Assembly (NCBI GenBank): GCA_964035545.1
Contig: OZ037765.1
Coordinates: forward strand, 24,861,504 to 24,925,503
DNA: 64,000 nt
Reading direction: 5' to 3'
DNA from: Bugula neritina
Lineage: Eukaryota > Animalia > Bryozoa
Shown here: positions 2,993-63,577 of the stretch, piece after piece
Layout of the letters: the number at the start of each line of letters is the position of its first letter
Numbering within the stretch: position 1 is the stretch's first letter
Made by a program: the position numbers and the translations under genes
The notes under the pieces: model-generated
What the model was told of the DNA's origin: nothing
The model's database searches: none
What the model saw: the letters and a program-made list of their open reading frames with translations, nothing else

Positions 2993-5900
2993 TTATCCCA
3001 TTCTGGAATAAGGAACTGCCTTCACCAGCCATGTAAGCAGTTTACTATGAGTCAGGGTGTGTCCATACAATGGGTTGAATATTCTTTCAAGCGATTTTAT
3101 ATTTCCATGGGTAATGTCAAATGGTATCTGAAATTATATCATAGACATTAAACTAGAAGAATTTCAACAGCGAAACTCAACCAACATAGAAATATATAAA
3201 AAGATAATAGAAAAACTGACATAATTTTAATACAAAGTACTGTAGGAGAAAGTTTTTATGCTTATTTTTTGTAAGTTTAATAAATGTTTCAAGAAATATG
3301 TAGTTTAAACACTACATGCAGCCCTTAGCAGTGACTAGTGCCTGATTATCTCCAATTATTAGCTAATTTACAAAATAGCTTGAATGGAAGTTTAATATCA
3401 GGTGTTAATTTTAATTGGATAAACAGAAGTGCATAGACCTTTTGAAATATAGCATTAATTTACAACATTGCATTTATTTAATTATGTATTAATAATTAAT
3501 GTTTGTTAACATTGTATTCATTATGAGAATACATGCTTACGTATGTGCACGAATAATGACTAGTTCATTTCTAACTTATTTATTTGTTACAAAATCATGC
3601 AGTAGTATTATGTACTACACACAAATTGTTCTAGAGGGTAGTGTTGACCCTCCCTACCTTCACGAGTTCTGTTGTAAGATCAGATGGTGTTTTATCAAGT
3701 TTATCTTTTTCAGTTCGAGCTTGCTCTAACTTAGGAGTAGAAGGTTTGTTTTCCACAACAGTCCCTGTATTAGCAGATGCAAATGTCTCCACTTCCCCAG
3801 CTTCAACTTCTGGTTGCAAAGATGGCCATTCCAGACCAAAGAGCTTATAAATCTCATTCATACACTGACGCACCATTCCCTAAAAAAAATGATTGAGCAT
3901 GTAACTTATATGCATCACAACACATCAAGTTTCAAAATCTGTCAAGTTGAGCTACAGATTTTTATAGCAAATCAAATTACAAGAATTATATGTGAAATAT
4001 TGATTATAAAAACATCGAATTTTCACCTGAAACTATTGTATAACCTTCAAAATGTCACCAGACTGTGAAACAGTATATTAAAGTGATCGAAAAATTATAA
4101 CCACTTTGGATATCATTCAGATTAAAAAACACTCCACTATAATAAAATTTTGAGATTTTGTGTATGCATTGAAGTTAGATTTCCGAGAGCTATGAAAAAG
4201 TTACCCATTGTTGTATTGGGATTTTCAATTTAGTTATAGTTATTTTCTCTTGCTATTAAAGGGCGCAAAACTCTGCTCGGGTACTGTAGTGGCCTGTATG
4301 AATGTAACAAGTATAAAAGAGAGTATGTATGAGAGAGAACCGTGATTGAAGATTGGGGATTGAGGATTGAGGACAGAGAATTAAGGAGGGACAATAGAGA
4401 CAGAACTTGTGTGTATGAACGCAATAGAATGTGTTAGGGTGTGTTAGTGAGTGCTTGCCCAGGATCCTAGACTGTGTAACACCACTGGAGCTAGAGTTGC
4501 CTCAAAAGCCAAACCAAGTAACCGGAAGGCTACAACCTAATGTATTAATTGGTGAGCTCACATTAACTCCAAGGTTACAACACCTTAACCCTCAGGCTTT
4601 AGATTATCGTTTTATTAAGCTGTTGTGTCTACCAGGATCCTTTCAATCTATCATAACATTATTAGAAACTGATAGTTGGCTTACCTCAATAGCTTCATCT
4701 TTTTTCAACTTTGGTGAGACAGGTTTCAATTTAGCTGCTGACTTAGACTTAGGACCTTTACCACCAACAGAAGTGCCGGCAGATGCAGTGACAACTGAAG
4801 GTGCTCGCCGCATCACATGTGGAGCTCCCGCCCCAGAGTCTACTAATGCCATCTCCGCCTTCTGCAGTACATCTATGAGGCTGCAAAACATTTAAAGTTT
4901 CATGAGTGTTAATTTTACTTGAAGTGAGCATATAATTTCAACAAAACTTTTAGCCTATATATTTGAAATTTTTGCAAGTAGGTGGTAGGTGCATTAAAAA
5001 CCTGTCATGGAGTTCGAACAGCTGATGTTTTGGTATTTTACACAGCCCAGCATAAGACCTCATCACTCTTTTATCTGAAGAATCCTTCTTCACCAAAGCA
5101 AATAGTAAGTACACCAATCTAAAACAAATATACATAAGAGTAATAGGCAGCTGCATTAATTACTAAATTTAAGATTTTAAGGCAATGGACTGAATTAATT
5201 ACAGTCAAAGCTTTAAATATTTAAATTTGCATTTGGTTGTCATTTAATGCGGTTAATAAAATATTACCCATCAGCATGAGCTGTATCATTGCCATTGAAG
5301 ATGGGGGAATACCACTGTAATGTGACCTCATTCTCACTTGGCAGAACAGCAACAGTCTCTGTCCCTGTGTTAATTAGACTCTCAGAGGTAGCTCTTCCAA
5401 AGTCTACAACACAAAACAACAAGTACTTCACCAAAGCAAGCTGATACTTCAATAAGCCAAGTAAAATACAACATGTCTAAGTAGAATTTGGTAACAAAAA
5501 TTACAAATAGCAAAATTTACAAAATATTTGCATAAAAAAGAGTTGAGGGGTTGTGAAGAATATAAGCAGCTAAGACTAATGTCATACTAATGGAAACAAA
5601 GATGTCTACTTTATTATTGTATGGTGAAAATAAATGCAAGCTTAGAAAATTGTACATTATTTAAGCGGAGACAACTTAACACAATGCTTATCTATTACAC
5701 CATGTTTAATTAACTGTAATATGGAAGAATACCTGGAACAGGTGCTAGCTGCTGGGTGTCGGAAGTCAGCTCTGCACTGGACGTAGCTGCAAAAGTTGCT
5801 GAGTTGGCAGCATAGTCAGTACTGATAACTCTAACTAGAGGTGGCCTGAATTGTTGAGAATCACTCAACCTTGTTAGATTAGGAGCTAAGGCTTTGGGTG

Positions 5901-38071: not shown

Positions 38072-40149
38072 ATGAGTATTGCTGGGTCTAGTGATGCTGA
38101 TACGAAATCAACAGTTTGTGAGATCTGTACTAAGGAACTAAAGAAGTATAAATGTCCAAAATGTGGCATACTTTAGTAAGTGTTAATTTGTTAAATATAA
38201 AACTCAAAGTCAATTTTGTAACAATTGTATAGTATTGAAATGACAACAAAAGTTTATTAGATGGAATGTGAAATCTTTGAAAAACAGATTACTACATCTG
38301 TGGCCAGGTGAAAGCATTTGCATGATGCAGTAATTCATAGAATTGATAGTTTGAAACTTTGATTCAAGATGTAACTACTTATATTTGGAGGCTGACAGAT
38401 TTTCTTTTTCAAACTGACAATCATAGTTTGAAATTTACAAATAAGTGAGTGATCATATTTTATTTATCTACATGTCTCACCAAAACTACTGTAAATAATT
38501 AGCATAACTGAGCCACCTTTGTACTGAAAATTTATACCAAATTATTTCAATAATTGGTCTCATTAGAATTAACTTGTTTTAGAGTTTATTACTTTCCACG
38601 AATACCATGCCCCCATCTTTTTGATTAAATAGTGAAATTAGCAGGCTACCATTTATTTTTTCAGTTTACAAATCACAGAGGTATTTTTTTATAGTTGTGT
38701 CTCTGTAGGTAATACAGTTGTAACGTATTTTTTGGTATGTTTCTAGTTGTTCAGTCATATGTTATAAACAACATCAAAACACTGACTGTGGAAATCGCGA
38801 AGAGAATGCATCTATTTTTCAAGTTATTCAGAATCAAAGTCAATCCATAAATGAGGAACAGGATTCGCTATCCCCATCATCTGCTGGTGAGATTAAATTT
38901 GTAGTCTAGTAAGGTATTTTTGTTCGATTTGAGAGTTTCAGTTTTGCCATTTCTAATCAACAGGATATTTTTTACTCTGTACTATGTATTCAGCAATATA
39001 ATGTAGGAAGACAAACGCATTCAAAAAAGATTATTGAATACTTCTTGAGCATTCATGTGACACTTTTTCTCTGCTGTATTACGCGGTATTTATTTTTAGT
39101 GCATATTTCGTTATACTACATAGTTATATGTTCTGTAAGCCTCGAGTTTTCTAATGAAGTAGTAGAAGTTCTTGGTGATGAGGATCTCTAACTACACAAG
39201 CTAGCATAACTCGCTATGCCAAGAAAGATTCTTGTTAAAATGATTCAACATGGTTTAATTTAAGATTAAAGTGTTTGAGCCAGTACAATGTTATTCCTCA
39301 ACATGAAAATGTTAGTAATTTCAATCTATACCAGCAAGTTAGTACTGCAACTGTTTAAACTTGCTCAGCTGCAAGGGTTCAAACCATACTAATTTGGCAT
39401 GCAATTTTCTGTATTTTATGTAAGTATTTCATCTCAAGTTTTTGTCATCTATTTTGGCACTAATGTTTCACTTTGTTTTTTGGGAGTTACAGTTGAAGCA
39501 AGTATTATGATTCCCAATTGGAAAATATGCTAGGTCTCAATCCCACTGCCTTATATGCATTCTCCACGAACACTTGCCTACCTTTGATAATATATTTTTG
39601 TTTTGAGGAAATTTCCTAAGTAGTGCCCTAAACAATTTTGGTAGCATATCGAAAATTTATTTATTCTACCTAGCTTATAATCATATGACTACAAAACACT
39701 TCAATATTTACCTTCTCTCTTGTATAAATAAAAAACCTGTTGGGAATAGAGTTGCCTCAACTTAATAACTAATAAGTATATTTTTCAGGAAGCATTTCCC
39801 ACTATTAAAAAGTTTTTGTTAAGCCTCAGCTCTACTAAATTTGGGAAATCAATTATACCATTGCAGGTACTGGTTGGTTGAAAGTATTTGTGTGAGATAA
39901 TGTATGTTTAATTTAGAAGCTGAGCTGATAGAGGCTGGTGATCGAGTAGCTGTAGAACAGCTTGAAAAACTCTGTGAAAATGACAAACTCATGGAGTTAT
40001 TATGCAACAAACATCTTAGAGACTACTTGGTAAAAGTGAATAGCAATCCAACTAAAGAAATTGACAAAGCAATGAAAGAGCCTATCTTTCTAGAATTTGC
40101 TAACGAGTGTTTAAAGATGGTAGAACCTGATAGATTTCAAGTTGATTGA
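38072..40149 (+). CDS. ZNHIT3: Zinc finger HIT domain-containing protein 3 (box C/D snoRNP assembly factor), 3 coding exons: 38072-38175, 38747-38886, 39917-40149
   Basis: Spliced product MSIAGSSDADTKSTVCEICTKELKKYKCPKCGILYCSVICYKQHQNTDC (zf-HIT) ... DRVAVEQLEKLCENDKLMELLCNKHLRDYL...AMKEPIFLEFANECLKMVEP (ZNHIT3-type C-terminal domain). GT-AG junctions are in frame. Confidence 0.9.
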
Positions 40150-40590: not shown

Positions 40591-43500
40591 CTATAAGGCT
40601 ACTTCATAAGAGTCTACAACAGCTTGTGATTCCTGGTGAGAAGAATTAGCAGTATCTGGTGGTACTCTAGCAGACTTGACCGCAGAAGACTGTCTAAATT
40701 TATTGTCCTCTACAGCCTTGCCACTGCAGTAACCTTCACAATTGGAGCGTCTATTGTAATTACTGCTCACCTGCTCTACATGTTCAGTCTGTATACACAT
40801 GCCTGTCATTGACTCCATTGTTGATAATTCGTCTTCTGGTAGCAAGTTGTTGAGTGAAGAAGCATGACCATTATCTCTCAACTTATTTGGTAATCTCATT
40901 TCAGAAATAATACTACTGGCAACACTTTTGGTTTCATCACCACCCTCACAGTTCGAGCTTTCCAACTACAAAACAAGACTTTCCTTACAAAATAAACTTG
41001 CAACTAACAATAAGTTTGCAGCACAAAAGCTGCTAAGCACTGAAACCCACTGTTTCGTTTATTGTATGAAACATTCTAAGCATCTGTAACATATCCATAA
41101 CGTAGTGAAACTCGTTTTATACAAGTATAGATAAAAATACTAAATATGTTTTCTGAATCACTTGAAAACAATTAAAGTAATTTATTTTAAATATCGAACA
41201 CACTACTTTAAAGTTTGGACTATAATATTATTGTCTGTAGTCAAAACAGGGCTGCCTAATCACATTGATCAGCATTAAAACTGTCAGAAGCATCTTGGCG
41301 ACAACACAAATACAGCTTTGCAATGGTTTACCCAATGAAATTGATTTTATAGTGCATTTCAACTAGTATACCTTCATCAGCTTGAGTAACATGGCATGGT
41401 GCCTGGTAGAAAAAAGAGTTAGTGAAATCTATTTTTGGTGAAACAGTAATTTAAAGCTTCCAGCAAATATATTTGTGTTTCTCATTGCCATCAGAAGTCA
41501 AACAAAAAGTTTACGTGTATAAGATTTATATTATACAACCAAATTGCTTTAGCACTTGTACTTGTATCAATTGTATTTATACAATAACCAAAATACTTCT
41601 GGATGAACGAAAGTAGACGGCCCCGTTTTAATGATGCAGTTAAACATGTTGGAATGCTTCAGCAACCTATACGCCATGGTATGAGGGGTGGGTGGAATGG
41701 GATGAGTCTCAATGCACTAAGTCAATTCTTGAAAGAACCATGCATTCAAAGCTGGTAATACAAAGCAGGCATAGCAAACTTACCATTTCTTTATTGATGA
41801 CCTAATAATTAGTCACCAACTGTTAAGTTAAGTCACTTAAACAGCAATTCAAATAATAGATGCCTAGCTATTTTTACATAACTTGCAAAAGCAACAAAAA
41901 AACTAAATCCTAATACACCTTGATTTGATTTGCATTGATTTTCAAAGTTCAAATTTTGATAAGCAGCTCAATGTGTTCAGCAGTGGCACTTGCTTTCAGT
42001 AAAAATATAAAATTTACCCTTTAGAACAGTCTAATTTTTAAGGTTGACTATTTTATTTCTTAACTCAACAACCCACAAGAACATGGCTATAGATCTACTA
42101 CTAATTGATTAGTCTGTTACAGAGCAAGCTTAGTATGGTGAATTATAAGGTCAAATATTATAATGCAGACAAAATAGGCTAAGGGTAAAATTCAACATAA
42201 AAAACCTAAAAACTTAACATAACTTATACCTTTGTATAAAGATGTGCTCGGCCAGAAGTATTTCCATTCGTAGAAGAATTGTCTACATATACATGAACCT
42301 TGTCCGGTGACGCCTTTACCATTTTAACTTTTTTCAGTAAATCTTTCTTAGGTTTCCTTCCAACCAATCTGCAAATCGTTATACATTGTGAGAAAAGAAA
42401 TAAATAGCTACCAACATTTGATTATATAATTCTTTTTTTCTGGTAAGAGAAGTGCTATTTGGATAAGGATACATACTTTGGCAGCCTGGAGCCAAAACAC
42501 AAGTGAGCCCAGTTGCGGATACAACCCTTTGTAAAAGGATTATGCCCTCCTTTGAATTTTCCAGTTACCTGCAAATAAAATTTTAAAAAATAGTTAAGGG
42601 ATATTAATTAAAGGAAATTAGTTATGGCTAACAACTTGAGTCCTTTTTTTAGATAGAATTGAAGTTCATTTTTAAGAACATTCTGCTAAATCAAAAACCA
42701 TTGGTTTACTTATAAAGATATTTTGTTTAATGCAGACACCAAATGTGAATTCAGGCTAGTGAGGACTTGAAAAGTTATAACACAATAATTTAAATTGTCA
42801 TACTAATATTTTGGCAAAGTCTTATTTCATTATTAGAGAACCTAAATTGTAAAATTTGCAACACAATATGATTGGCAATAAAAGCTATAACTTTATAAGA
42901 CAAGCTGAAATGGATAGTCTAAAGAAAGTCTGTCATTGTCAGTATGTTTATGAGAACACTTTATAATCTAAAAGCTTGTGAGGTAACAGAATTCTTTCGA
43001 ATTTGGTTCCCAATACAGATGGAGATAGAAAGAGTATTTCACAGATGATTCTTGGTTAAACAAAATTAAGATATGAATGAAGCTAAGTTACCTGTTCATT
43101 GGTAGTCCGACCTTTAGATATCAAAAATATGTGAAAACCAAGAAGAGCTGTCACCGGTACCATTAAAAGTGAATCCAAAACAGCAACACAAATACTGTCA
43201 GAGGGAGTTAAGAATATTAGTATATTCAGAGACAATGCTTCATTCTGAGCAAAAGATATACAGCCAAATTGCTTTTGGCTCCAGTGTCAATCTCATTACC
43301 TAACATGAAGTATACTTCATAACATGGTCACGCTAATCTAATTGGATATGAATCAATGCAAAATATTGACATCAAAACTTAATAACAATAAAGAAAAAAC
43401 ATTTCCAAAGGATACGTAATTATAGGAGTGTATTCAAGAAAGTTTGTGCCTTCCTTCTTCATTAAGTGCAGGGAGAATATGCAGAATGCTAGAACACTCA

Positions 43501-44742
43501 ACATGTGTGCAGTGAGAGATACAAGGTATGTAAAGAAATACTTGTAGTTTCTGCTTCCAATGCAATTGTTGACCCATGGGCAATGATGGTCAAACGTCTA
43601 CAATATAAAAAAAACTCTGAGATATTCTGAAAAAATGCAAAATTTTATTCAATTCTAAAATATTGCAAAAGGCGATTTCAATACAAAACCTAACTTAGAA
43701 TTTGTCATCCTGGGCTATTTAAAACACTATGACAATTACATAACTGTATTTCCAACAGTAAATAGCTCACATCAACACAGTAATTGCAGATACTGCAGTG
43801 AGAACACCTTGGCGGTCGATAGAACATGCATGTTGTGCACCATTTCATTCTAACCGTTACACCATTAATATTGATGTTTTGATGAAGTGGTGATCTTTGA
43901 TCGTCAACTGCTTCATCATCTGAAGCTACAGCAGAAACAAAATTAGACAAATGCAAATTCAAGCCTTAAATTGCGCCAAAAACCAACTGAATTTTTTTTT
44001 CAAATCGCTATCTAAAACTCATAATACGCACCACGTGGGTATCTCCCAGGATCTATTACAGTTGCCACAGTAAAGTTGGCAATAACAAAGAAAAATAATA
44101 TCCCATCATATATTATATGAGCAGACCACGAGTGGTTCTGTGCAAGATAAAGACATCTACAATTATATAAATTAAAATTATAACATCAGTTTTCCTGTAT
44201 TGAAGAGATGCAACATGACCTGAATAAAGATGAGTAAAACGTATTACAAGCACAACTAACATTACAAGTATTTACTGCATGGCAGCAACTATTGAGCTGT
44301 TGGTATTAAAAAAGTATGGATGAATATGTCAAAGGCACATGCTCAGTCAATACTTTTCTGCTACTAACATAGATTCAAAAATCTTCTATATTTTATAAAT
44401 AATTAAAATAGTAATATCGCTATAACATTATGTATAATTATATGCATTTAAGAAGCATAATCAAAAGAATTTCAACTAAAATTTTCCAAGACCTTTCAAC
44501 AATGCTTAATCTATACAACATTATAGAACAGTTACTGGCTGTTGATATTTTTCAAATTGCAACAATTTATAGTTGAAATTGCTGTGTACAAAATATTATA
44601 TACAAGTTCAATTGCTAAAAACGCATAAAAATTGAAAAAGAGTAGATAGCAATACATACGGAAATCCATAAAAGAGACCAGTAAGAACTAAAGTAAGGGT
44701 CCAAGAACTGCAAGCAGGAGCATATCGTGAACACAGCCCCAT
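40591..44742 (-). CDS. ZDHHC5/8: Palmitoyltransferase of the ZDHHC5/ZDHHC8 subfamily, multi-exon
   Basis: [11 protein letters not shown]...; [50 protein letters not shown] (DHHC-CRD); [19 protein letters not shown]; C-terminal YEVAL* resembling the YEISV PDZ ligand of ZDHHC5/8. Confidence 0.9.
43195..43415 (-). other. U12-type (minor spliceosome) GT-AG intron in the ZDHHC5/8 gene
   Basis: 5' splice site GTATCCTTT; branch site TTCTTAAC at 43214-43207, ~12 nt from the terminal AG; no polypyrimidine tract of U2 length; splice keeps frame (PIIT|ICVAV). Confidence 0.9.
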
Positions 44743-47328: not shown

Positions 47329-50300
47329 ATGGGAAATGGGCACAGCGGTGATGAAGGTAGTAAACCTCCTGACACTCGGAGACCCAGGCAGCAACGCCAA
47401 ACAATCACCAACACCCCCTACCTTAAATCTCTCTTTCAGGTACAGCTTCCTTTTTAGTTCAGACTAATAGTAGGTGTTGTGACAATCTAAAATATCTTAC
47501 TTCAAACAATATATAGTAAATTATACATAAATACATACACACACAAAATATAAGGTACAGATTATTTCTGTTAGGTACGTTTCACTTTGTTCACAATGTT
47601 TTTTCTATTTGAAATCATTTAAAATAATTGCATTGCTCATCTGTAAGAATGTTTATATTGTAGAAACTTGCCCGAAAATCAGATGATACTTCCAGTGAAG
47701 GCACTCATGTCACACAACAGATCTTTGAGGTTTGTTCAGTATATTTTTCTTTTTTGCTTTAGATTCAACTTTTTGTCCTGCCTTTTGCATGTGCTTCGTT
47801 TTCAGTTTATCTTAACAGCAACATATCATGTAATACATACCTTAGACCAGTAAAACCAGCCTTTTTCAGGATTCTCAGTTTATCGAGAATGGAAGCATGT
47901 AGGCTTGGTAACTGTCTAAACCTGCTAACTCTGGAGGAAATAGTTTCGCTGACTTTACAAATTAAGTCAATGCCAGTTTTAATAGAAGGTTTTATCAAGG
48001 AGCAGCTTGAAAGGCCTGTTGGTTGTTACATATTAAATGTATTTGTATAAGTTGATGTAAATATCACTTTTCACCACCACTTTACCAGGATGCTTTCAAT
48101 GGGCCTCTCAGAGTTCTGGGGAAGTTGTTGTTCACTCATATAAAGGCACACGGAAAGAATGCCAGGAGAGCGAGTATCCACCTGGAGGAGTTTCTTAGAG
48201 TGTCCAGTGATGTCATGAGTGTGCTCACTAACACCCAGCAGCTAAATTACTACTACGACGTCTTCTCTCAGGGTAAAGACTTATCTCTAGAAGGTAATTA
48301 TTATTATATGTCAGTTATTACAACGTTTCCTAATAGAAAAATATCATAGAGTAGTGTGTTACTAAGTTTATATTGCACTTGGGTCATATTTATATCTAGT
48401 TTAAGTTTCAGTTTTAAAGTGACCAGTTCACTTTGCTGATTCTGTTTTCAGATGTCTCCATTCATGATTTTGTAAATTCAGCTCTGTGGATCAAGCTGTA
48501 TTTTGAAAAATGGGAAAGTATTTATAAGTTTATTTAACTTGATTGGAGCTATAGTGGATTTTGTAAAATTTTGCGATAGTTTTTTAAAGGATAGCGTTAT
48601 AAGGTTTTTTGTTGAAAAACTTCTCTCTAAATAAAGTGTACCAACTAACTACTTGTTGAGGATTATAGTTCAGGTTTTTTAATGCAGCTGCACAGCTTAA
48701 TGTCTTCACTTGGTAAAGCTAAGTACTGTCATGTTCCATCATAGACTGGTTAAGTAAGCTATAGTAATACAATATCTACTTGTAGTAGTTGTAATAGTAG
48801 TTGTAGTAGTAGTAGTTGTAGTAGTAGTAGTTGTAATAGTGTTGGCTAGTCTCCACTGTCTTAGTACCATTTGATGGGAGGTACTACACAGGAAGTAAGT
48901 AATGTAGCTGTAAAAGGTCTATTATTATCTCATTGGGTAAATATTGTTATAGTGAATATGTAGCTCAACAGTGTGGCACTATTCTGACCTTACATAGTTG
49001 AATAGCAGACGGTTGCTTAACTAGAAAATGATGACATTTGATTGCTATTAATCCACTGAGCTGGAATATACCTGGAGAGGCCAAGGACGTTTTAGCGTGG
49101 CCAAATAGTTTAGCTCCGCCTTAACATGGAAAACTTAACCACGCCTACTTGTTTTGCACACAGCAGTAGTAGTAAAATCCATTATAAATGCAAGCTATTA
49201 GAGCTAATAAATTAAGGAAAACACTAAAAAATAATGAAAATTCAGCACTGTGAAGCAGGAATCAATTATTTTGTTTATTTTACTTTTGGTATTTGTAATT
49301 TCATGACTAATTATCATTTTATGAAACATGTACCTCAAGTATATATGATGATAACTTTAATAACCTAACAAATGCATTACATATTTATTGATTAGATCAA
49401 CACATTAGTCAAAATGAAATGAAAAGCAACAGCAAAGCAAATTTCAGCCTTAGTACATGAAAACTGACAGTAAAGATAACAAGTATAAAAGTTTATAAAT
49501 AATATAAAAAACAGATGGTAAAACACAGCTTTACAAAACAGGCAAGTAACAGATTTCCTTAAACCTTTCAAAGTTTTAAATTCTGTTTTGAAAGCAATAA
49601 GAGATTAAAATAAAATTACAGAATAAACAAAAATTAATATTATATTGCAATAACAATATTTGTGATTATCTAATGTTATAATATAAATACAATAAATATG
49701 ATTAATTAACCACATCCTTATTACTGGCCTCTAAACAGTACATTTTTGTTGCTACATTGCCTGAAATTTAGTTTGTGCATAGCAATATTTGTTAGTTTAG
49801 CAATGTGGTGCTGGAATAAGTCATAATAAACTTCAATAAGCAAATTTAAAAGGGAGAAATGATGATTTTCAATGCCTAATGATGTTTCCATGGAATGTTG
49901 AGCAATTCCAAATATGTCATATTTACCAATTTCTTGCTTCACATCTATTTGTAGCTGAAGTAATTTCACGAACTTTTGGCCTTTTAGGTGTTTGTGAGTG
50001 CATAAACAAGTGGTAATAACTCCATCTGAAGGTATAGTAAGCCCACCATTGTTTTTAACATGCAATAGTTTTTTGAGCTTACCATACTTGAGACTGCAGC
50101 ACTCCTTGTTCACTAGAGCTTGCCTGCACTCTAGACATGTTACTTTTCTTAGTGCCTTTCGGACAACCCACCCAGAGATGTAGACAACAACATTACCCAA
50201 AACAGGGCCAGCTAAAACCCTTACTTTTTCAGCAGGTTTTAACTCATCATGAATGAAGATATCCGCATTATCTTCCTGAGAAAATGGTGGAATATAGCTA

Positions 50301-53300
50301 GTTGAAGCGAGAATAGCAGTTGTGTTATCTAATGGCTTAGAATTTCCTGAGTTGCCTGGATGTACACCACATCGGGTCACCAATTTTCTAAAGATAGACT
50401 GAAAGCCAGTTACAGATGGGTTATTATTCCATCCACCTAAAACAGATATTAGGTTGACGACTTTAAAAAAATGCTTGGACATCAATTGCCTGTTCACAAT
50501 TAATGATTGGATTACGTTTACCCAGAAAAAATGATGTTTTTTAGAACACAAGCAAAACCTTGCATGCAATTAAGCCAAAAAAGTCATTTAATTTAAAAAA
50601 TGCACAATTGCTTTGACACCACAGTTTTGGAAATTTTTGAAAATTCATTATTCTTGTTTCTTGATATTCAAAAGTTGATAAAATATACTTCATATTGCAT
50701 GCATTTTAACCACTAAGCTCATGCAAAAAAATTCACTTTTCAACACAGTTGGTCCAGCCGACCATCTTAGTTGCACCTATCAAAGCAAAGTGAAAAACCG
50801 AACACCTGAAGGAAAGAGATAAGAGAGTAAGAGAACAAATGAACATGTTAACATAAGTGCATGCAGACTGGGCTTCATGCATAGCTGTTCAGAGCTATAG
50901 CATACCACAACGGCGAACTGCATTGAAGAAAAGCTCTAAATGGTCTTGCGAAAATTTATACATTAGCAGATAGTCGAGTGTTTTAGGCACCAACAGTTTC
51001 TCCACCAACCCAAATACTGTGTCAATGGCACATACAAGTCCAGTAATACAAACATGTCTGTAAATAACATAAATAGGGACAGGCACATATTAGATCTGAA
51101 ATATAAGCAATTAACACTTTCTTTGTTAATAGGAAATTTACCTTTTGGTCTTGTACAGAGGTATCCCTTCATTATTCTTTAGGCCTAGCAAATATTGCCG
51201 TGTATCTTTCAGAAAAGGAGTGATGACACTGATACCATTGAGATGTAAAGGCTGCTTGTAGCCTTTAGCTATTGCTGATCGACTATTCAGGATGTCAAAC
51301 AACCGATCAACTCGCTACAGAAAAAGTAACATCAACAGAACATGGGACGATTGCAGTTACAGTATTTTAAAGAAATAAAGCCAAAAGCTGTAACAAACCC
51401 TATTTATACCAGGCTTACAGTCAACATTTTCCATCCATCTATAAAACATTAATTGTTGTCACATGATGTAGTCAATATCTAAGGATTATTTTATTTCAAA
51501 TGCTGATTAAAGAACATCTTACCGCCTCAGGGATCGTGGGGATGGGAGTGTCATGTAACTTCTGAGAAACTCATAAGCCTTTGGTGAGTAGAGATGTAGC
51601 GTTAGTGCAAATTTTTGCTGACTTTCTGAGTATTTGCCACGGAGTGGAGTGAATAGGCCATCAGGAACATCTGTATGGTAATATCAACTTTAGACAGAGT
51701 TTCAACTGAAAATGTCAAGGCGTTATTAAATTGTAAAATCATACCAGCAAAACCTTTCAACTTTTCCTCCAATTCACCATTGATCAAACTTTTTTCTCTG
51801 ACCAACTTGATGCATTCTGCAAGCTTCATTTTTGATCTTTTGGCACGTCTAGTTGAATTGCTAACTTGCTTCTGTAATTGGCTAACCTTTTCTTCTAAAA
51901 ACCTAACTCTTTGCTTCAAAGCATCGGGAGTGGTACTATAGCAATGATCCTGTATCATATGAAATTATTCAACTTTAATACAAAAATAACCAAATGTAGA
52001 AAAAATATATTATTATAGTATACAGCACAGCTATTTACCATAAAGTGGCAAGTAAATACATCAATATTAAGTCATAGTTAAATAAGCTATCTAATAACCT
52101 TAAGAACTACAGCTGCTGAAGTGTTCAAGCTCATTTTAGTGGTTTCAATTGAAATCTCATCTTTTTCTTCAGCACGGCGACTAGTATGAGTAGTTCGGGG
52201 AGTTCTTTTTCTCTAAAAATTGAAATATACAGATGTGCAAGCACAATAATTAATTTTATCATTCCAATGACTGTTGCATGAATATCAACTTACTATAAGT
52301 CTCTCTGGAACAGCAACCAATTCCTCTGCTGGAACAGCTCCACTTCGCAAACGCCGAGGTTGGCTTGTGCTTTCGAAAGAATCGCTATAAAAATGATCGC
52401 TACACAGTAGAGATCTTTCACTAGGTTCTTCTTGGCGGCGAGAAACTTTCCACCAAACATTCCAACGACTGAAGTCCTTCTGCTTGTTGGGAAATCTAAA
52501 TAAAAAAATACTGCACTAGCCAAAATTATTTACAAACTGATATGTTATGCTTTATCAATAGTGCAACCTATTTAAACCATAAAAACATTAAAACTTTAGG
52601 TAACCGTAAAATCCAATATCAATCAACAGAAGATTTTCAATATTTATTAAAGAGAGTAAATTAATCCAGTAATGCTTTAAAAATAATAAACTTGCTGTAA
52701 ATAACATCAACATAATAAAGTTGTTAGCAATAATAATAGTGACATCAATATGAGTAGATATTCAGAGTGAGTCACTCACACTTCGACTTTCACATTTTCA
52801 CATTGTGTAGTTACTGTTATTGTTGATCATAATAATACTATTAGTAATAGTACTATTCATACTCATACTGATACTCGAATTATAATAACAATTTATGAGT
52901 AAGTTACTACTACTACTGAGTACCTGTACTGGTAGTAGTAGTAGTAGTAGTACTAGCAGTTGTAGTACTAGTGCTCTACTAATAACAATAACACTAGCAG
53001 TAGGCTAGTAGTACTAGCAGTTGTAGTACTAGTGCTCTAGTTTCAATAACACTAGCAGCAGGCTAGTAGTAGTAGTAGCAGTAGTAGTAGCAGCAGCAGT
53101 AGTAGTAGTAGTAGTAGCAGCAGCAGCAGTAGCAACAGCAGCAGCAGTAGTACTTTTATACTGGTACCGTAAGTATAGCATTAGGCTTAGCTATTAGTAT
53201 TACTATTAGTATTAGTGTATTACTATAGTACTACTATTACTAGTAGTAGACGTAGTAGAGTACTACTACTACTAGTACTAGTACTACTAGTAGGCAGCAG

Positions 53301-56300
53301 CACCGCTACCACAACTATTAAGCCTACTGTTACGCTAGTTAATGTATTACTTTTACTGATTTTTGTAACTAAAGCCATATACTTACTTGTGAAAAGAGAT
53401 TTTTTTGTCTTTACTGTAACTGCTGTACTGGTAGTTGCGGCAATTGTATGCATAACACTGAGACCCAGTGGTCTTGCTTCTTTGACCCTTAGTTTGCTTA
53501 GGATACGGAGAATTCGACATGTTCAACGAAGTAGAGGTGATAGAGAACACAATTAAATAAAAATATAGTTGCTTGAGATATAAAGCAGGACAAAAAACAA
53601 AGTTTAAAAGTGAGATTCACTCAATCGAAATGATGGACGACCGGCTCTATTTTCTCCCGCTAGAAAAAGAGCATGCTCGGGCTCACAAAGCCAATCGGCA
53701 ACGAGGTTACATTACAAAGTACACCCGTACCCATTCCAGATATTATTGAGTTCATTGTATTAATCAATCTTATAATTTGCCGTATAATTTATGTGCATCA
53801 CCATATATATATATTGTTGCTTTCAGGTATATATCACATGGTGCAGGTTGCTTATGCTGTGTCCCTAGTTGTGGCATATCTTCCATTTGAACAAACTTCC
53901 AACACTGATCATTTACTCAGGGCATTAGCTGTGGGAATGGTAAGCAGCAACTTCAGCTGTGCCATCTCTTTAAGTAGTTAAAGTTTTCCATGTTAAGTTC
54001 AGATTTAACTTGTAATCATAGTTATTTACAATACAAAATACAATTTTTGTCAACTACATATATAAGTTATAAAAAGTTTTATTGCGTCCTTGCAAACAGT
54101 TTTGTAAAATTTGGCCTTTTTATTTGTAAAATAATCTAATGTATTAGATATAGGCTGTAAAATTTTGACAGATGGGTGCAAATGAAAGTATAGACAAAGC
54201 GGAGTTTGTGTCTTGGTGCAGCAAACACATTCCCCACATATTCAATGGTGTGCACAGCTTTCTTCTTATCAAACTCTCTGGTGCAGAGTTTGATGACATG
54301 AGTTGGCATCAGCGTATGTCCCAGGTATGGTCCTTGACATTGCTGCTGATTTAGAAAAATTAACCAATGCTTATTACTGAATTGTGTAAGTTCTACCAGG
54401 TAAATGCTATATTAAATTTACATGCGGCTTCATATTTTTTATAAAAAAAATCAACATTTACATAAATATTAGGAATATGCACATGAGAAAATTGGTCTTG
54501 GGAAATAATTTATCATAATTTTATCATAATATTATTTTTCATGAGATGAACCATATTTAGATACAAAAACTACAAAGTGGTTTGGCAACTGCACCTTGTT
54601 TATCACACATGGGTTATGGTCAGTGTTTTTGGTGTAACTTGTTTATTTTTATTCTAATGTTTGCTTATTGCTGTTCACTTTGTTAGGCTAAAGGCAAGGT
54701 AGGTAGATTTCTCAGGTGGAATTGTCGTAGCTTACATAATAGTCAGATCCTAAGCTGGGGGGTTGGGCGAGGCAGCTTGCTTACTAACTTATCTATGAAT
54801 TAATTAACCATTGAAGGAGAGAAACAGCTTTCCGACAGTCTGAGTTAGTGCTTATTGGTTGGAATTATGTCTGAATCTGGGGTTAATAACCTGCATGGTT
54901 GCTTGGTTACATAATGTAGGGACTTTTTGGCCAAATAAGGGTTTCTCATACATAGATCTCAGTTCAACTGCAGCCAGGTCAAAGGTCAATTTCTATCTAC
55001 GCGAGCCAGCCTATCTGCTCAGCTGGAAACTTGGTTAGATCTAGGGCCAAATACTTCCTTAACAACACCAAATTGATTTAGGTTCAGAAGCTCATAACTA
55101 ATGAGGTAGAAAAAGTATGCTTCGTTGTGACAGAATACAGGGTTACTACTTAGTGGTGAAATTATTAGTACTATAGGTATTAGCTTTTAATAATTGAACT
55201 GTTAGCAGAACTAAGCAGTGCATGTAGATTACAATAAGCTGTGGAAACATAAGGAAATTCATTGTTGTACAGTTTAATAAAAAAGGATGAATTTATTTCC
55301 ACCAACAGCTTGTGTATTTTATTAGCTGTTAAACTTCAGCCAAATATAAAACACATAGAAATAATACTGGCTAAGTGGGGTTTAAACCCTATTCAACTGC
55401 TTTTCACATTCTCAGTTATAAGTAATATTTTTTGGTTGTTGAATTTCAATTAGTCTATAATAAGTCTTATGTCAAAACACTATTCTGAGCGCTTTTCATT
55501 TCACCTCTTGGCATCATCATTATACTTTCTATATTCCAGCTCCACCCACTGTTCTGTAACTCCCTCTATTCCATTATGGTTTATAATTAGTCTAACACAC
55601 TGTTATCAAGTATGTAATGGCAGTATAATATGCAGTATGCCACGCAAGTGATCATCTGCATTACTCCATGCTCTAATCTAATATTAAAGGGTTTCTAAAT
55701 TTGGAGCATTTCTTGGGTTGAAGGCTCGAGTATTTTTGTGTGTGGTGCACCTGGAATATTTGAGTTGTAAACTTGTATTTGCATTTTTGTTCAACAACTA
55801 ATGGGATAAGAATTTCTGGTGTTTCTTTTTAGTTAAATTAACATAAAAACAAAATATGTTTTAAGTCATTTTTTATGAAAAGTAATTTATTATGCCCATG
55901 AGATTTTACTATTTTTAGTCAATTCAACATGTATTCCATAAAACTTTGTTAGATTAACATGAATTTACAGTGCCTATATAAGAAAAGTTGAAAGTAGTGT
56001 GTCTTATTTATTTTGGTCTAGTCTTCAATTATTAGCACTAAAACTGTTCAATGATTTTCGCACCTCAATGCTACACTACCTTTCTCAGTTGCTGAAAGCT
56101 GAAGTGTCGCTAAAGCTTCATGTGTCAAGTATATTCACTTCAACTTTAGCTTAAAACTTGACACAAAATACAAATGTAGCCTCAAATGTGGAAAAATTCA
56201 ATTAATAAAGTGTAGTTTTAGAAATCAGAATGAGATTATAGGCGGCAAGCTGGTGACCTGCAAATATATAGTGAATTCTCAAGAAAAATGGAAGATTTAT

Positions 56301-61113: not shown

Positions 61114-63577
61114 CTATGAACCTTTCTGTGCCTGTCTATGAAGTTTAAGACATTGTGGAGAACAGAATGTATAGTTCAAGTATTCGAAGGGTGTTTTACC
61201 AGTGATATCTTTAGCACAGTGATGGCATCGGCTACAATAAAAAATAAAGGAAGAGATCAACTGGTTTGAGCAATCTTATTACAGCATGCTTGCTGTTATT
61301 TGGTAAAAATATCATGCATACATACTTGAGTACTTGGGGAACTTTAGACTGAGCTCCTGCAGCCTGTAACAGCCTTCTTTCTGCAGCTAAAGCCCTCTAT
61401 AAAAATTAAGTCAATGACACCGATATAGTAATTATTTAGTCTTAAATATTGTGTAAGTTCATACACTGGATGTTATTTGTAAGTAAATTTAATCTTATTG
61501 AAAATATTTCAAATGACCAAGAAATGTGTGACATAAATAAAGTAGAGAGTAGTGGTATGTCTGTTGAAATAGTAATAGCAGTCTGATTAGTAAAACAATC
61601 TATTCAAACAACAATAACATAATAATGTTGAAACTTTCTAAAATTTAAGAGTTATGCTACCTTCTCCCGATCACTAAGGGCCAGGAATCTGACTTTCTCT
61701 TCGTTTTCAGCTCGCTGTGCAGCTGCCTCTGCCTTCTTTACCTGTTATTGGAACCAAATGCTGTCAATATTCATAATAAATCAAAGAATTTAAGACAGTG
61801 GGCTGTTTTGACATACATCAGATATATCTAGCTTAAACGTATACCCAATCATTTGGTTCAGAAAAAATTTATTGTCGGATAATATTCTTGTACATTCAAT
61901 TTCAAGTTGGCAGACAAAATCTTAGTTTATAATTATAAAACTTAATATCTTACATATAACTTTAATAAATGTTAGCAAGTATTTTTAAAGCTTATAAATA
62001 TACCTTTAATCTATCTTTTTTCTTTTTGTTGAGTTCTTTTCTCCTCTCAGAGTCCTTGGAATCTTTAAGAGCTACCATTTCTCTAGTCAGTGGACCAGGA
62101 ACCTATACATGGTGTATAATGAATTGCTACCGTATTTCAACATGCCCTAGCATCTAAGTCAAAATTGTGATACGTCAATATACACTCATATATTACTTTA
62201 AGAGAGTAAACAAATTTTCAAAATTCACTTATGCTTCATTATATTGAATTGTACTTGCTCTTATTCTGGACATACCTGAGCTTTGATATAGTCGTATTTT
62301 TCAGGAAAACTTTCCATAAATATTCTAAATTCATTTCTAACAGCTTTATTCTGTGTAGATAGATATGGTACTACATTTTTCTCATCACTGAAAGCAAATA
62401 ATTTGATACATACATTGAAGGCACACAACAAAACACTGAAATCACCACCCTTGTTCATATTTGAATTAAAACTATACATGTTCAGATTTTTACTAGCAGA
62501 ATTTAAACTGTTTAATCAGGTTTTGCTTTTGCTAGTGCAAGTGGAGTAGTTAGTATAAAATAGGAAAATCCAAACTTGTGCGTCATTAAAAACATTCTTT
62601 TGTAAAGAGCAGCCTCTTATGGCTGGTATTTGGTACATTATTTGACATATGTTGAATATGAAACAAATTATATGATATTTACGATCTTGCTGGATCACAT
62701 CCTATGCCAAGAAGATAGGGTATAAGATGAGAGTGGCATTTCTGACAGGCTATGTGTAAAAGGGTATGACCTTGACTGTTCAAAGGAAGACTAATGGCAG
62801 CTGAGAAGTTGTCTAGCCCTTGCAATATCTCATTAGAGTACCCAGTGACTAGTCTTTCCAACTCAACCTCATCGCCGACAGTGCAGGCTGTATAGAATTC
62901 ACTTTGGAAGGCTAGCACTGCAAACAGGTTCAGATTAAAGGACTAATTAAAATATAAAATAAATGATATATTATTTTGATGTATTTTTCGGTGTAAATTG
63001 AGGTGAATTTATATTTGCACTAGTTGAAAGGAGCACTCCTAAAAATTAGATTTCTTAATTTCAAACCCCAACTTCAAAGTATTTTTTCAAATTGCAGGTA
63101 TTAAAATCAAAACCACGCCTTCAAGATTAATTGGGTGCCTATTAATCAAAGAGTTATCCTCTCAGTACAAAAGTATTGGGTCATGCAAAATATGAATACC
63201 AAGAGTTTTGGAGTTGGCTATTCAACAATTAGGAAGTTGGAAAGTTGCATAAAAAATAAATGCAATAGGTCAAGGAAATGGAATCTTTACAACTGAAGGT
63301 AGCATACATTTCAGTATATATAGCAACGTGTGTACCCTTTAGCCGACAATGAAGCTTATTTGCAGGCTACGTTAAAATATTACAACCAATTGAAGTTAGA
63401 ATTGTCGGAATTAAAATATAGCTCACTTTTATTTTGTGCTGGCACATTTAGATCTTTCTCCTTAACAGACTTTTTATGCTTAATTTTTTCTCCTTTCAAA
63501 TCATCAGCATGAGCAGTATTTACTAGTACCACTGAATCTTCAACTTCTTCTTCACTGGGCAGTTTACATTCAGCATC
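61114..63577 (-). CDS. ANKZF1: Ankyrin repeat and zinc finger peptidyl-tRNA release factor ANKZF1/Vms1, 3' portion (gene continues beyond window)
   Basis: Ankyrin repeat GHTLLHIACQKCHSHLIPYLLGIGCDPA; VRNEFRIFMESFPEKYDYIKAQVPGPLT; RFLALSDREKRALAAERRL (VIM-like); C-terminal RCHHCAKDITGKTPFEYLNYTFCSPQCLKLHR...*. Confidence 0.9.

Follow-up and report, generated by a model that had tools for sequence, protein, structure and literature searches.

The 4704 bp at 49054-53757 of the window (the whole 64,000-nt stretch of DNA that was analysed) are very probably, with a probability of about 0.88, a non-autonomous, internally deleted copy of a cut-and-paste DNA transposon of the P superfamily (P element/THAP9-like). 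The 8-bp target-site duplication (TSD), the TIRs, and the N-terminal THAP domain and P-type HTH of this superfamily were all found, but the RNase H D, D, E domain with its GTP-binding insertion is incomplete, and the copy is therefore a defective family member which encodes no transposase. The family was assigned using Pfam, and the verdict rests on the copies present in the genome.

Element boundaries and insertion site

The same 8 bp, TATTAATC, abut both ends of the element, with the left copy of the TSD at 49046-49053 and a perfectly matching right copy at 53758-53765. The TIR at the 3' end of the gene (CACTGAGCTGGAATATACCTGGAGAGG..., 49054-49080, plus strand) is unchanged in all seven copies of the element, and that at the 5' end of the gene (CAATGAACTCAATAATATCTGGAATGG when read inward, 53731-53757, minus strand) matches the other tip at 18 of 27 positions, which is the figure given in the original prediction and one that was equalled by none of 20000 shuffles. 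The imperfect match had been taken as a sign of decay, but is not read as such here because the freshly inserted copies all bear identical ends. In the Drosophila P element, by comparison, the TIR is a perfect 31-bp repeat. In a comparison restricted to exact words, none of at least 9 nt, either inverted or direct, was common to the two 400-bp ends of the element. An empty-site allele or haplotig was also looked for, and the left flank was found to be unique in the assembly. The suggestion that the host gene is a TLDc gene was not confirmed, as a genome-wide Pfam search for TLD gave no match within the window, and the open stretches on the plus strand of the flanks matched no Pfam family.

Gene model and domain content

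The gene lies on the minus strand and has nine exons totalling 1884 nt, which run from an ATG through 627 codons to a single terminal TAA (checked by script), and all eight of its introns are GT...AG. The reading and script thus reproduce the predicted nine-exon open frame of about 627 aa with canonical splice sites. Domain searches were run on single exons, and the exons were joined only for the frame check and for the counts of codon changes.

Exon 1 (53387-53520; this and all following gene features are on the minus strand) carries the start codon (ATG) and the first pair of THAP cysteines (CYAYNC) and, as for the basic linker of exon 3 (52099-52212), was determined by minus-strand reading and script. 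Intron 1 (52496-53386) contains a TAG/CAG microsatellite and tandem-repeat block at about 52830-53300. Most of the THAP zinc finger (...CSDH..., SGAVP) is encoded in exon 2 (52294-52495; PF05485, E 9.6e-8), and the THAP signature reads C-X4-C-X48-C-X2-H in the minus-strand translation. The same reading of exon 4 (51745-51949) gives a leucine-zipper-like stretch, ALKQRVRFLEEKVSQLQKQV, of three heptads with L at the d positions and V at the a positions, for which the Pfam matches to coiled-coil families were sub-threshold only. Exon 5 (51523-51670) encodes the P-element-type HTH (Tnp_P_element, PF12017, E 8.3e-16).

Exon 6 (51399-51438; RWMENVDCKPGINR) is truncated; its counterpart in the full-length relative described below has a further 56 nt. 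Intron 6 (51315-51398) is exactly as first described, an 84-bp phase-0 intron joining ...KPGINR to RVDRLFDILNSR, and in the full-length relative it follows a small exon ending ...ATINFIR. The splicing of 51399 to 51314 and the transcription of the 627-codon gene are predicted only. Exon 7 (51142-51314) starts with RVDRLFDILNSR and matches TNP-like_GBD (PF21788) at positions 99-119 of 119 only. The match to the TNP-like_RNaseH_C profile is split over two exons; positions 1-17 are in exon 8 (50906-51057; E 8.5e-9), together with SQDHLE of the catalytic-Glu helix, and the second half (GGWNNNP) is in exon 9 (49721-50436), which also contains the TAA and a C-terminal region weakly similar to THAP9_C. 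A PDB sequence search with exon 9 gave no match at E up to 1, and TNP-like_RNaseH_N was matched by none of the nine exons when these were searched against Pfam exon by exon.

The deletion junction and a full-length relative

A search of the genome for a full-length sister, proposed with the original prediction, found the locus L031 on another contig (G000:C8), which in alignment has 986 extra bp at the junction. This segment encodes RNaseH_N (PF21787, E 6e-35) with both aspartates, the DxxHxxKxxRN motif and positions 1-97 of the GBD (PF21788), and its alignment to Drosophila P transposase (chain 6P5A) covers the second Asp and DxxHxxKxxRN. The 252 codons missing from the core-deleted copy are open in L031, which is flanked by its own perfect 8-bp TSD, GTGGGTAC. 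The comparison confirms that a P/THAP9 gene has lost, in frame, its two catalytic aspartates, DxxHxxKxxRN and most of the GTP-binding insertion.

The deletion junction, at which the 986 bp are absent relative to L031, bears a TAGGG microhomology (51398-51402, minus strand). TAGGG occurs at 4456-4460 and 5442-5446 of L031, and positions 2345-2349 of the query match both sides. Whole exons were not removed by an intron-to-intron event, as had been proposed; the 5' breakpoint lies within exon 6 and the 3' breakpoint within the final bases of an exon further downstream. One of the pentamers is inside exon 6 and the other covers the final codon of the downstream exon and its splice donor, and because their codon phase is identical, neither the donor site nor the reading frame was lost. 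The 986-bp deletion probably arose through microhomology-mediated repair at TAGGG, the route to which internal deletions in P elements are ascribed. More than chance could lie behind the in-frame outcome and the survival of the complete C-terminal third.

Between L031 and the copy at 49054-53757 divergence is 1.17% in the exons and 2.94% in non-coding sequence, and pN/pS is 0.12 without one double-change codon and about 0.15 with it. The low exon divergence and pN/pS validate the exon model and indicate past constraint in the transposase lineage. As it is 1-3% diverged, L031 is not the direct parent of the deleted form.

Seven recent copies and the source of transposase

Seven copies of the element are present in the genome, 99.89-100% identical across all 4704 bp and each with unique flanks. 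Each has its own perfect 8-bp TSD (GCTGCTTA, CCTACTCT, TATTAATC, GCAGAGCG, GTCTTATG, TTTAAAGC and TGCTTACA). The 72-bp junction sequence occurs at exactly seven places in the genome, on five contigs, so that the search for the same deletion suggested at the outset recovered it in all seven copies. Three copies are fully identical and every variant is private to one copy, with 0-3 private changes per copy and about 10 changes overall. These include a 2-bp frameshift in exon 9 of one copy (L006), a missense change in one other, and a difference of one 3-bp unit in the intron 1 repeat block of a third (L007); the 627-codon frame is open in six of the seven.

Near-identity combined with different flanks and individual TSDs shows that the insertions are very recent and that the element belongs to a mobile family rather than being a domesticated gene. 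Segmental duplication of the seven loci is contradicted by the same unique flanks and TSDs. The data match the alternative that had been held in reserve, a young deletion derivative, and they mean that the genome of a non-insect invertebrate has had a P-type cut-and-paste transposon moving in it until practically the present day, with three of its copies identical over 4.7 kb.

A core-deleted copy would be unable to cut DNA, and presumably owed its movement to transposase that a full-length element provided in trans. We infer this enzyme and do not see it, as there is no intact P transposase gene in the assembly, in which only four loci bear RNaseH_N. Exon 1 of L031 is interrupted by a 1069-bp insert that bears a reverse transcriptase and whose closest relatives are about 99% identical. 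The other three loci were rejected as transposase sources; L060 (G000:C3:21.49 Mb) has 7-9 stops per large exon homologue, L061 (G000:C8:6.13 Mb) has frameshifts and stops, and L033 (G000:C8:5.17 Mb) consists of fragments. An older, non-coding derivative has been amplified to at least 22 copies, showing that spread does not need an ORF. The genome now has only defective forms, namely the seven in-frame core-deleted copies, the older non-coding derivative (at least 22) and one full-length element broken by a retroelement, which is the end state that experimental work in Drosophila predicts for a non-autonomous takeover (PMC12393704).

Comparison with KP and other P-like elements

The closest parallel is with KP, an internally deleted P element that retains the THAP domain and zipper, has lost the catalytic residues, is mobilised in trans and outnumbers the full-length element (PMC7776569; PMC12393704). 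As in KP (and in D50 and other deletions that encode type II repressors), the element described here has intact ends, 8-bp TSDs, a THAP domain with an adjacent zipper and no catalytic residues; its 986-bp internal deletion leaves both ends intact, seven copies have transposed, and the THAP domain and heptads are in an open frame from which both Asp residues are absent. The KP protein, however, is 207 aa long and essentially THAP plus zipper (PMC7776569), whereas the copy at 49054-53757 is in frame for 627 aa and has in addition the HTH and a complete C-terminal third, made up of the GBD tail, RNaseH_C (including the Glu motif) and the THAP9_C-like region. The gene here also differs from KP in having eight introns and in residing in a non-insect invertebrate. 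The 66-kDa P repressor of Drosophila is a product of IVS3 retention in a full-length element and is without the C-terminal third. In the present element it is instead the middle (RNaseH_N and most of the GBD) that is gone, at the DNA level, and the C-terminus that is retained.

Among non-insect elements, the zebrafish Pdre/THAP9-type P-like elements likewise have TIRs and 8-bp TSDs, and the presence of multiple internally deleted copies among them is taken to indicate recent mobility (PMC7776569). They have 13-bp TIRs and 12-bp subterminal repeats, whereas the TIR here is an imperfect 27-mer and the 400 bp next to either tip showed no inverted subterminal word of at least 9 nt; the copies here are much younger, since they are essentially identical. 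Human THAP9 resembles the family of L031 in its architecture of THAP, HTH, RNase H/GBD and C-terminal region, but it is a single-copy gene, has an active core and lacks TIRs, TSDs and deleted copies (PMC7776569), and the locus at 49054-53757 is the opposite on each of these points.

A possible repressor role

By analogy with KP, a repressor role for the 627-codon product is plausible. If expressed, a protein consisting of THAP, zipper, HTH and C-terminal region would be catalytically dead and DNA-binding, and could inhibit transposition; its THAP and HTH domains would occupy the transposase-binding sites, and the zipper and C-terminal region would form mixed oligomers. That the core-less 627-aa protein is in fact expressed and works as a poison subunit or a repressor of the KP type (type II), and helped the subfamily to replace the autonomous element, is a tentative proposal which we consider rather unlikely. 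It is consistent with the intact THAP C2CH signature, heptad zipper and HTH, with the unchanged 5' region and ATG, and with the frame being kept in six of seven copies. There is also no intact autonomous copy to set against seven of the deletion form, which parallels the takeovers by KP and other deleted elements in Drosophila (PMC7776569; PMC12393704). Against it, chance could preserve a frame in about one case in three, no constraint is visible when the roughly 10 changes include one frameshifted and one missense copy, and the non-coding derivative reached three times as many copies. Furthermore, the C-terminal third may fail to fold once the RNase H beta-sheet is gone.

Somewhat more doubtful again is the stronger form of this proposal, that in this non-insect invertebrate the protein acts naturally as a dominant-negative against a P-type transposase, and that its spread helped to rid the genome of all intact autonomous copies. 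Were it true, a wild transposon family outside Drosophila would have been shut down by its own deletion derivative. The family is in any case a natural non-insect system in which to ask whether deletion derivatives only compete for transposase or also repress.

Selection and domestication

The intact ORF and imperfect TIRs had been advanced as evidence for selection on the protein, and for a domesticated, host-selected THAP9-like DNA-binding gene within a host intron; a pN/pS of 0.12 against L031 would point the same way. However, this constraint belongs to the transposase lineage and accrued between transposon lineages, not since the deletion. With 0-3 changes between them, the copies are too young for dN/dS since the deletion to be informative, and nothing points to selection on the protein, as one of the seven copies is already frameshifted (L006) and another carries a missense change. 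A domesticated gene would be a single fixed locus with no TIRs, TSDs or sister copies, whereas seven dispersed copies with 99.9-100% identity were found, each with TIRs and a perfect 8-bp TSD that differs from the others. Domestication is thus ruled out by copy number and TSDs, to the extent that we give it hardly any weight. The open 627-codon frame is probably due to the youth of the copies and a roughly one-in-three chance of keeping the frame, and not to selection by the host. For annotation, this means that seven seemingly intact 627-aa 'THAP9-like' gene models should be recorded as copies of a transposon and not as host genes.

Least probable of all, to the point of being negligible, is that the missing core is an assembly artefact in which exons were collapsed or dropped, as the identical junction is found at seven independent loci on five contigs, the undeleted form is correctly assembled at L031, and the junction bears a clean 5-bp microhomology.

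Structure of the gene and its insertion

The P/THAP9-type unit at 49054-53757 is a transposon insertion. A perfect 8-bp direct repeat, TATTAATC, flanks it on both sides (49046-49053 and 53758-53765), and an 8-bp duplication is the hallmark of P-type integration (PMC7776569). Between the two tips of the element 18 of 27 positions match, a figure equalled in 0 of 20000 shuffles. A search for subterminal repeats (exact words of at least 9 nt, 400 bp at each tip) found none. No empty allele is present in the assembly, as the left flank of the insertion is unique there.

The gene lies on the minus strand and has nine exons within 49721-53520, with GT...AG borders at all eight introns. The exons were joined by local scripts for the frame check and codon-change counts, giving a frame of 1884 nt (ATG, 627 codons and one terminal TAA), and Pfam was run per exon. 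Exon 2 matches THAP, exon 5 the P-element HTH domain, and exon 7 only positions 99-119 of the 119-position profile of the GTP-binding insertion domain. TNP-like_RNaseH_C is divided between exons 8 and 9 (SQDHLE / GGWNNNP region), exon 9 has a THAP9_C match below threshold, and TNP-like_RNaseH_N was not matched by any of the nine exons. Direct reading shows the THAP signature C-X4-C-X48-C-X2-H entire over exons 1 and 2, and three leucine/valine heptads in exon 4. Intron 6 (51398-51315, 84 bp, phase 0) connects ...RWMENVDCKPGINR with RVDRLFDILNSR...; this junction, the open nine-exon frame, the GT-AG introns and the missing core domain are all as given in the original prediction, and were confirmed by reading, script and per-exon Pfam.

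The full 4704 bp is present seven times in the window's own 216-Mb assembly at 99.89-100% identity (two copies each on contigs C1 and C5, one each on C2, C3 and C8). All seven have different flanking DNA and their own perfect 8-bp duplication, and are therefore separate integrations; segmental duplication is ruled out on the same grounds. Three copies, including that in the window, are identical, and the other four differ by private changes only. One sister copy (L006) has a 2-bp deletion in exon 9 causing a frameshift at codon 462, and another (L005) carries Ala433Thr.

Intron 1 consists mostly of tandem repeats and microsatellite of the TAG/CAG type (block at about 52830-53300). Among the seven copies this block differs by one 3-bp unit, and in the longer relative L031 it is far shorter. 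Similar TAG repeats occur just beyond the element at 48780-48840.

Origin of the deletion

L031 (G000:C8:1830468-1837089), which has its own target-site duplication, GTGGGTAC, shows two large insertions when aligned with the element. The first, of 986 bp, sits at the exon 6/intron 6 junction and comprises the remainder of exon 6 (56 nt), an intron (144 bp), an exon (586 nt), a second intron (86 bp) and an exon of 114 nt ending ...ATINFIR. Its coding parts, 252 codons, are open in L031 and match TNP-like_RNaseH_N (E 6e-35) and positions 1-97 of the GTP-binding domain. The alignment of this segment with the P transposase of Drosophila (PDB 6P5A) covers the second catalytic Asp (vtmDghasn / ivsDlgtgn), with an LDAMS motif upstream, and extends across DpcHmiKlvRN / DtpHliKlvRN. 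The catalytic triad of P transposase is D230, D303 and E531 (PMC7776569); the window element keeps only the Glu motif, and both Asp motifs fall within the deleted segment. The deletion thus took the half of the RNase H fold that forms its beta-sheet, together with the larger part of the GTP-binding insertion.

The deletion was originally predicted to run from intron to intron. The alignment instead places the breakpoints in mid-exon 6 and at an exon end, joined at a 5-bp microhomology. The first TAGGG (L031 4456-4460) is within exon 6 (...AAT AGG G/CT...), the second (L031 5442-5446) consists of the small exon's last codon and the first base of the donor (...ATT AGG/GTTTGT), and the deletion brought these pentamers together as one. 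At either breakpoint the AGG codon is in phase 0, and GTTTGT was retained as donor, so truncated exon 6 acquired a working (predicted) donor and the frame continued. The prior chance that the frame would survive was roughly one in three.

The second insertion, 1069 bp in exon 1 at about codon 9 (L031 1432-2500; G000:C8:1830731-1831799), carries a reverse-transcriptase fragment (PF00078) and has relatives of ~99% identity elsewhere in the genome. Apart from it L031 is open, and no other full-length relative has its catalytic core open.

The family in this genome

Divergence between L031 and the element is 1.17% in exons and 2.94% in non-coding sequence, with 14 synonymous and 6 non-synonymous single changes (pN/pS 0.12, or about 0.15 if one double-change codon is counted); these contrasts support the exon model. 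The low ratio indicates past constraint in the transposase lineage and is uninformative on selection since the deletion.

RNaseH_N matches occur at only four loci in the assembly: the interrupted L031, a fragmented copy at C8:5.17 Mb, and two diverged relatives (50-60% amino-acid identity) with many stops and frameshifts. As none of these is an intact P-type transposase gene, the seven copies were probably mobilised by an enzyme from a polymorphic, lost or unassembled copy. A different, older derivative is present in at least 22 copies, ~98.5% identical among themselves, and lacks intron 1 through the intron preceding the ...NFIR exon, together with part of exon 9. It has no usable ORF, so amplification in this family is independent of coding capacity.

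At locus L028 (3373-3396; G000:C1:617777-624253) two ~3.4-kb older non-coding derivatives lie tail-to-tail, their 3' tips 7 bp apart (AACTACT), an inverted pair of the kind produced by local or aberrant transposition. Nested or fragmented P-family pieces also cluster within ~13 kb at L033 (G000:C8:5166500-5176499) and C8:5178930-5179278, among them an exon 6 without the deletion and part of a catalytic exon at 90% identity.

Interpretation of the open frame

The window element is a defective, trans-mobilised P-type element, internally deleted in a manner already known from Drosophila and zebrafish. Its open frame is best read as a side effect, without selection, of the copies' youth and of a deletion that happened to stay in frame (probability about 0.6): the seven copies are too young for decay, and nothing among them suggests that the frame is protected by selection.

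A real inhibitory role like that of KP is possible, though on our analysis unlikely. Drosophila has internally deleted elements, KP (207 aa) and others like it, that repress transposition, and autonomous copies can be displaced by non-autonomous ones (PMC7776569; PMC12393704). The product of the window element, if made, would bind DNA by its THAP and HTH domains and pair by its zipper, without cutting. Unlike KP, it derives from an in-frame middle deletion in which the HTH and the C-terminal third are kept, and it is also unlike the 66-kDa repressor, a product of intron retention that lacks the C-terminus. Domestication as a host gene, the other option originally offered, is effectively excluded now that seven near-identical copies have been found; human THAP9, in contrast, is single-copy, without terminal inverted repeats or target-site duplications, and catalytically active. 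Misassembly as the source of the missing core is more improbable still and can be dismissed, a 72-bp probe over the exon 6/intron 6 junction having full-length matches at exactly the seven copies.

Host neighbourhood

The TLDc host gene originally proposed was not recovered, a genome-wide Pfam TLD search giving no match in the window, and the plus-strand open stretches flanking the insertion (47763-48346, 53827-53941 and 54169-54351) gave no Pfam match. Neighbouring host exons encode a ZNHIT3 C-terminal domain (39901-40146, plus strand), a DHHC palmitoyltransferase (43382-44185, minus) and ankyrin repeats (62682-62942, minus). TLD-domain matches were found on many small contigs of the assembly, e.g. 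C45:7993-75408, C180:22444-22878 and C272:9514-10035. These run through several in-frame TAA/TAG codons and never TGA, suggesting a ciliate-type genetic code and hence that the unplaced contigs may include DNA of such an organism, possibly a contaminant or associate.
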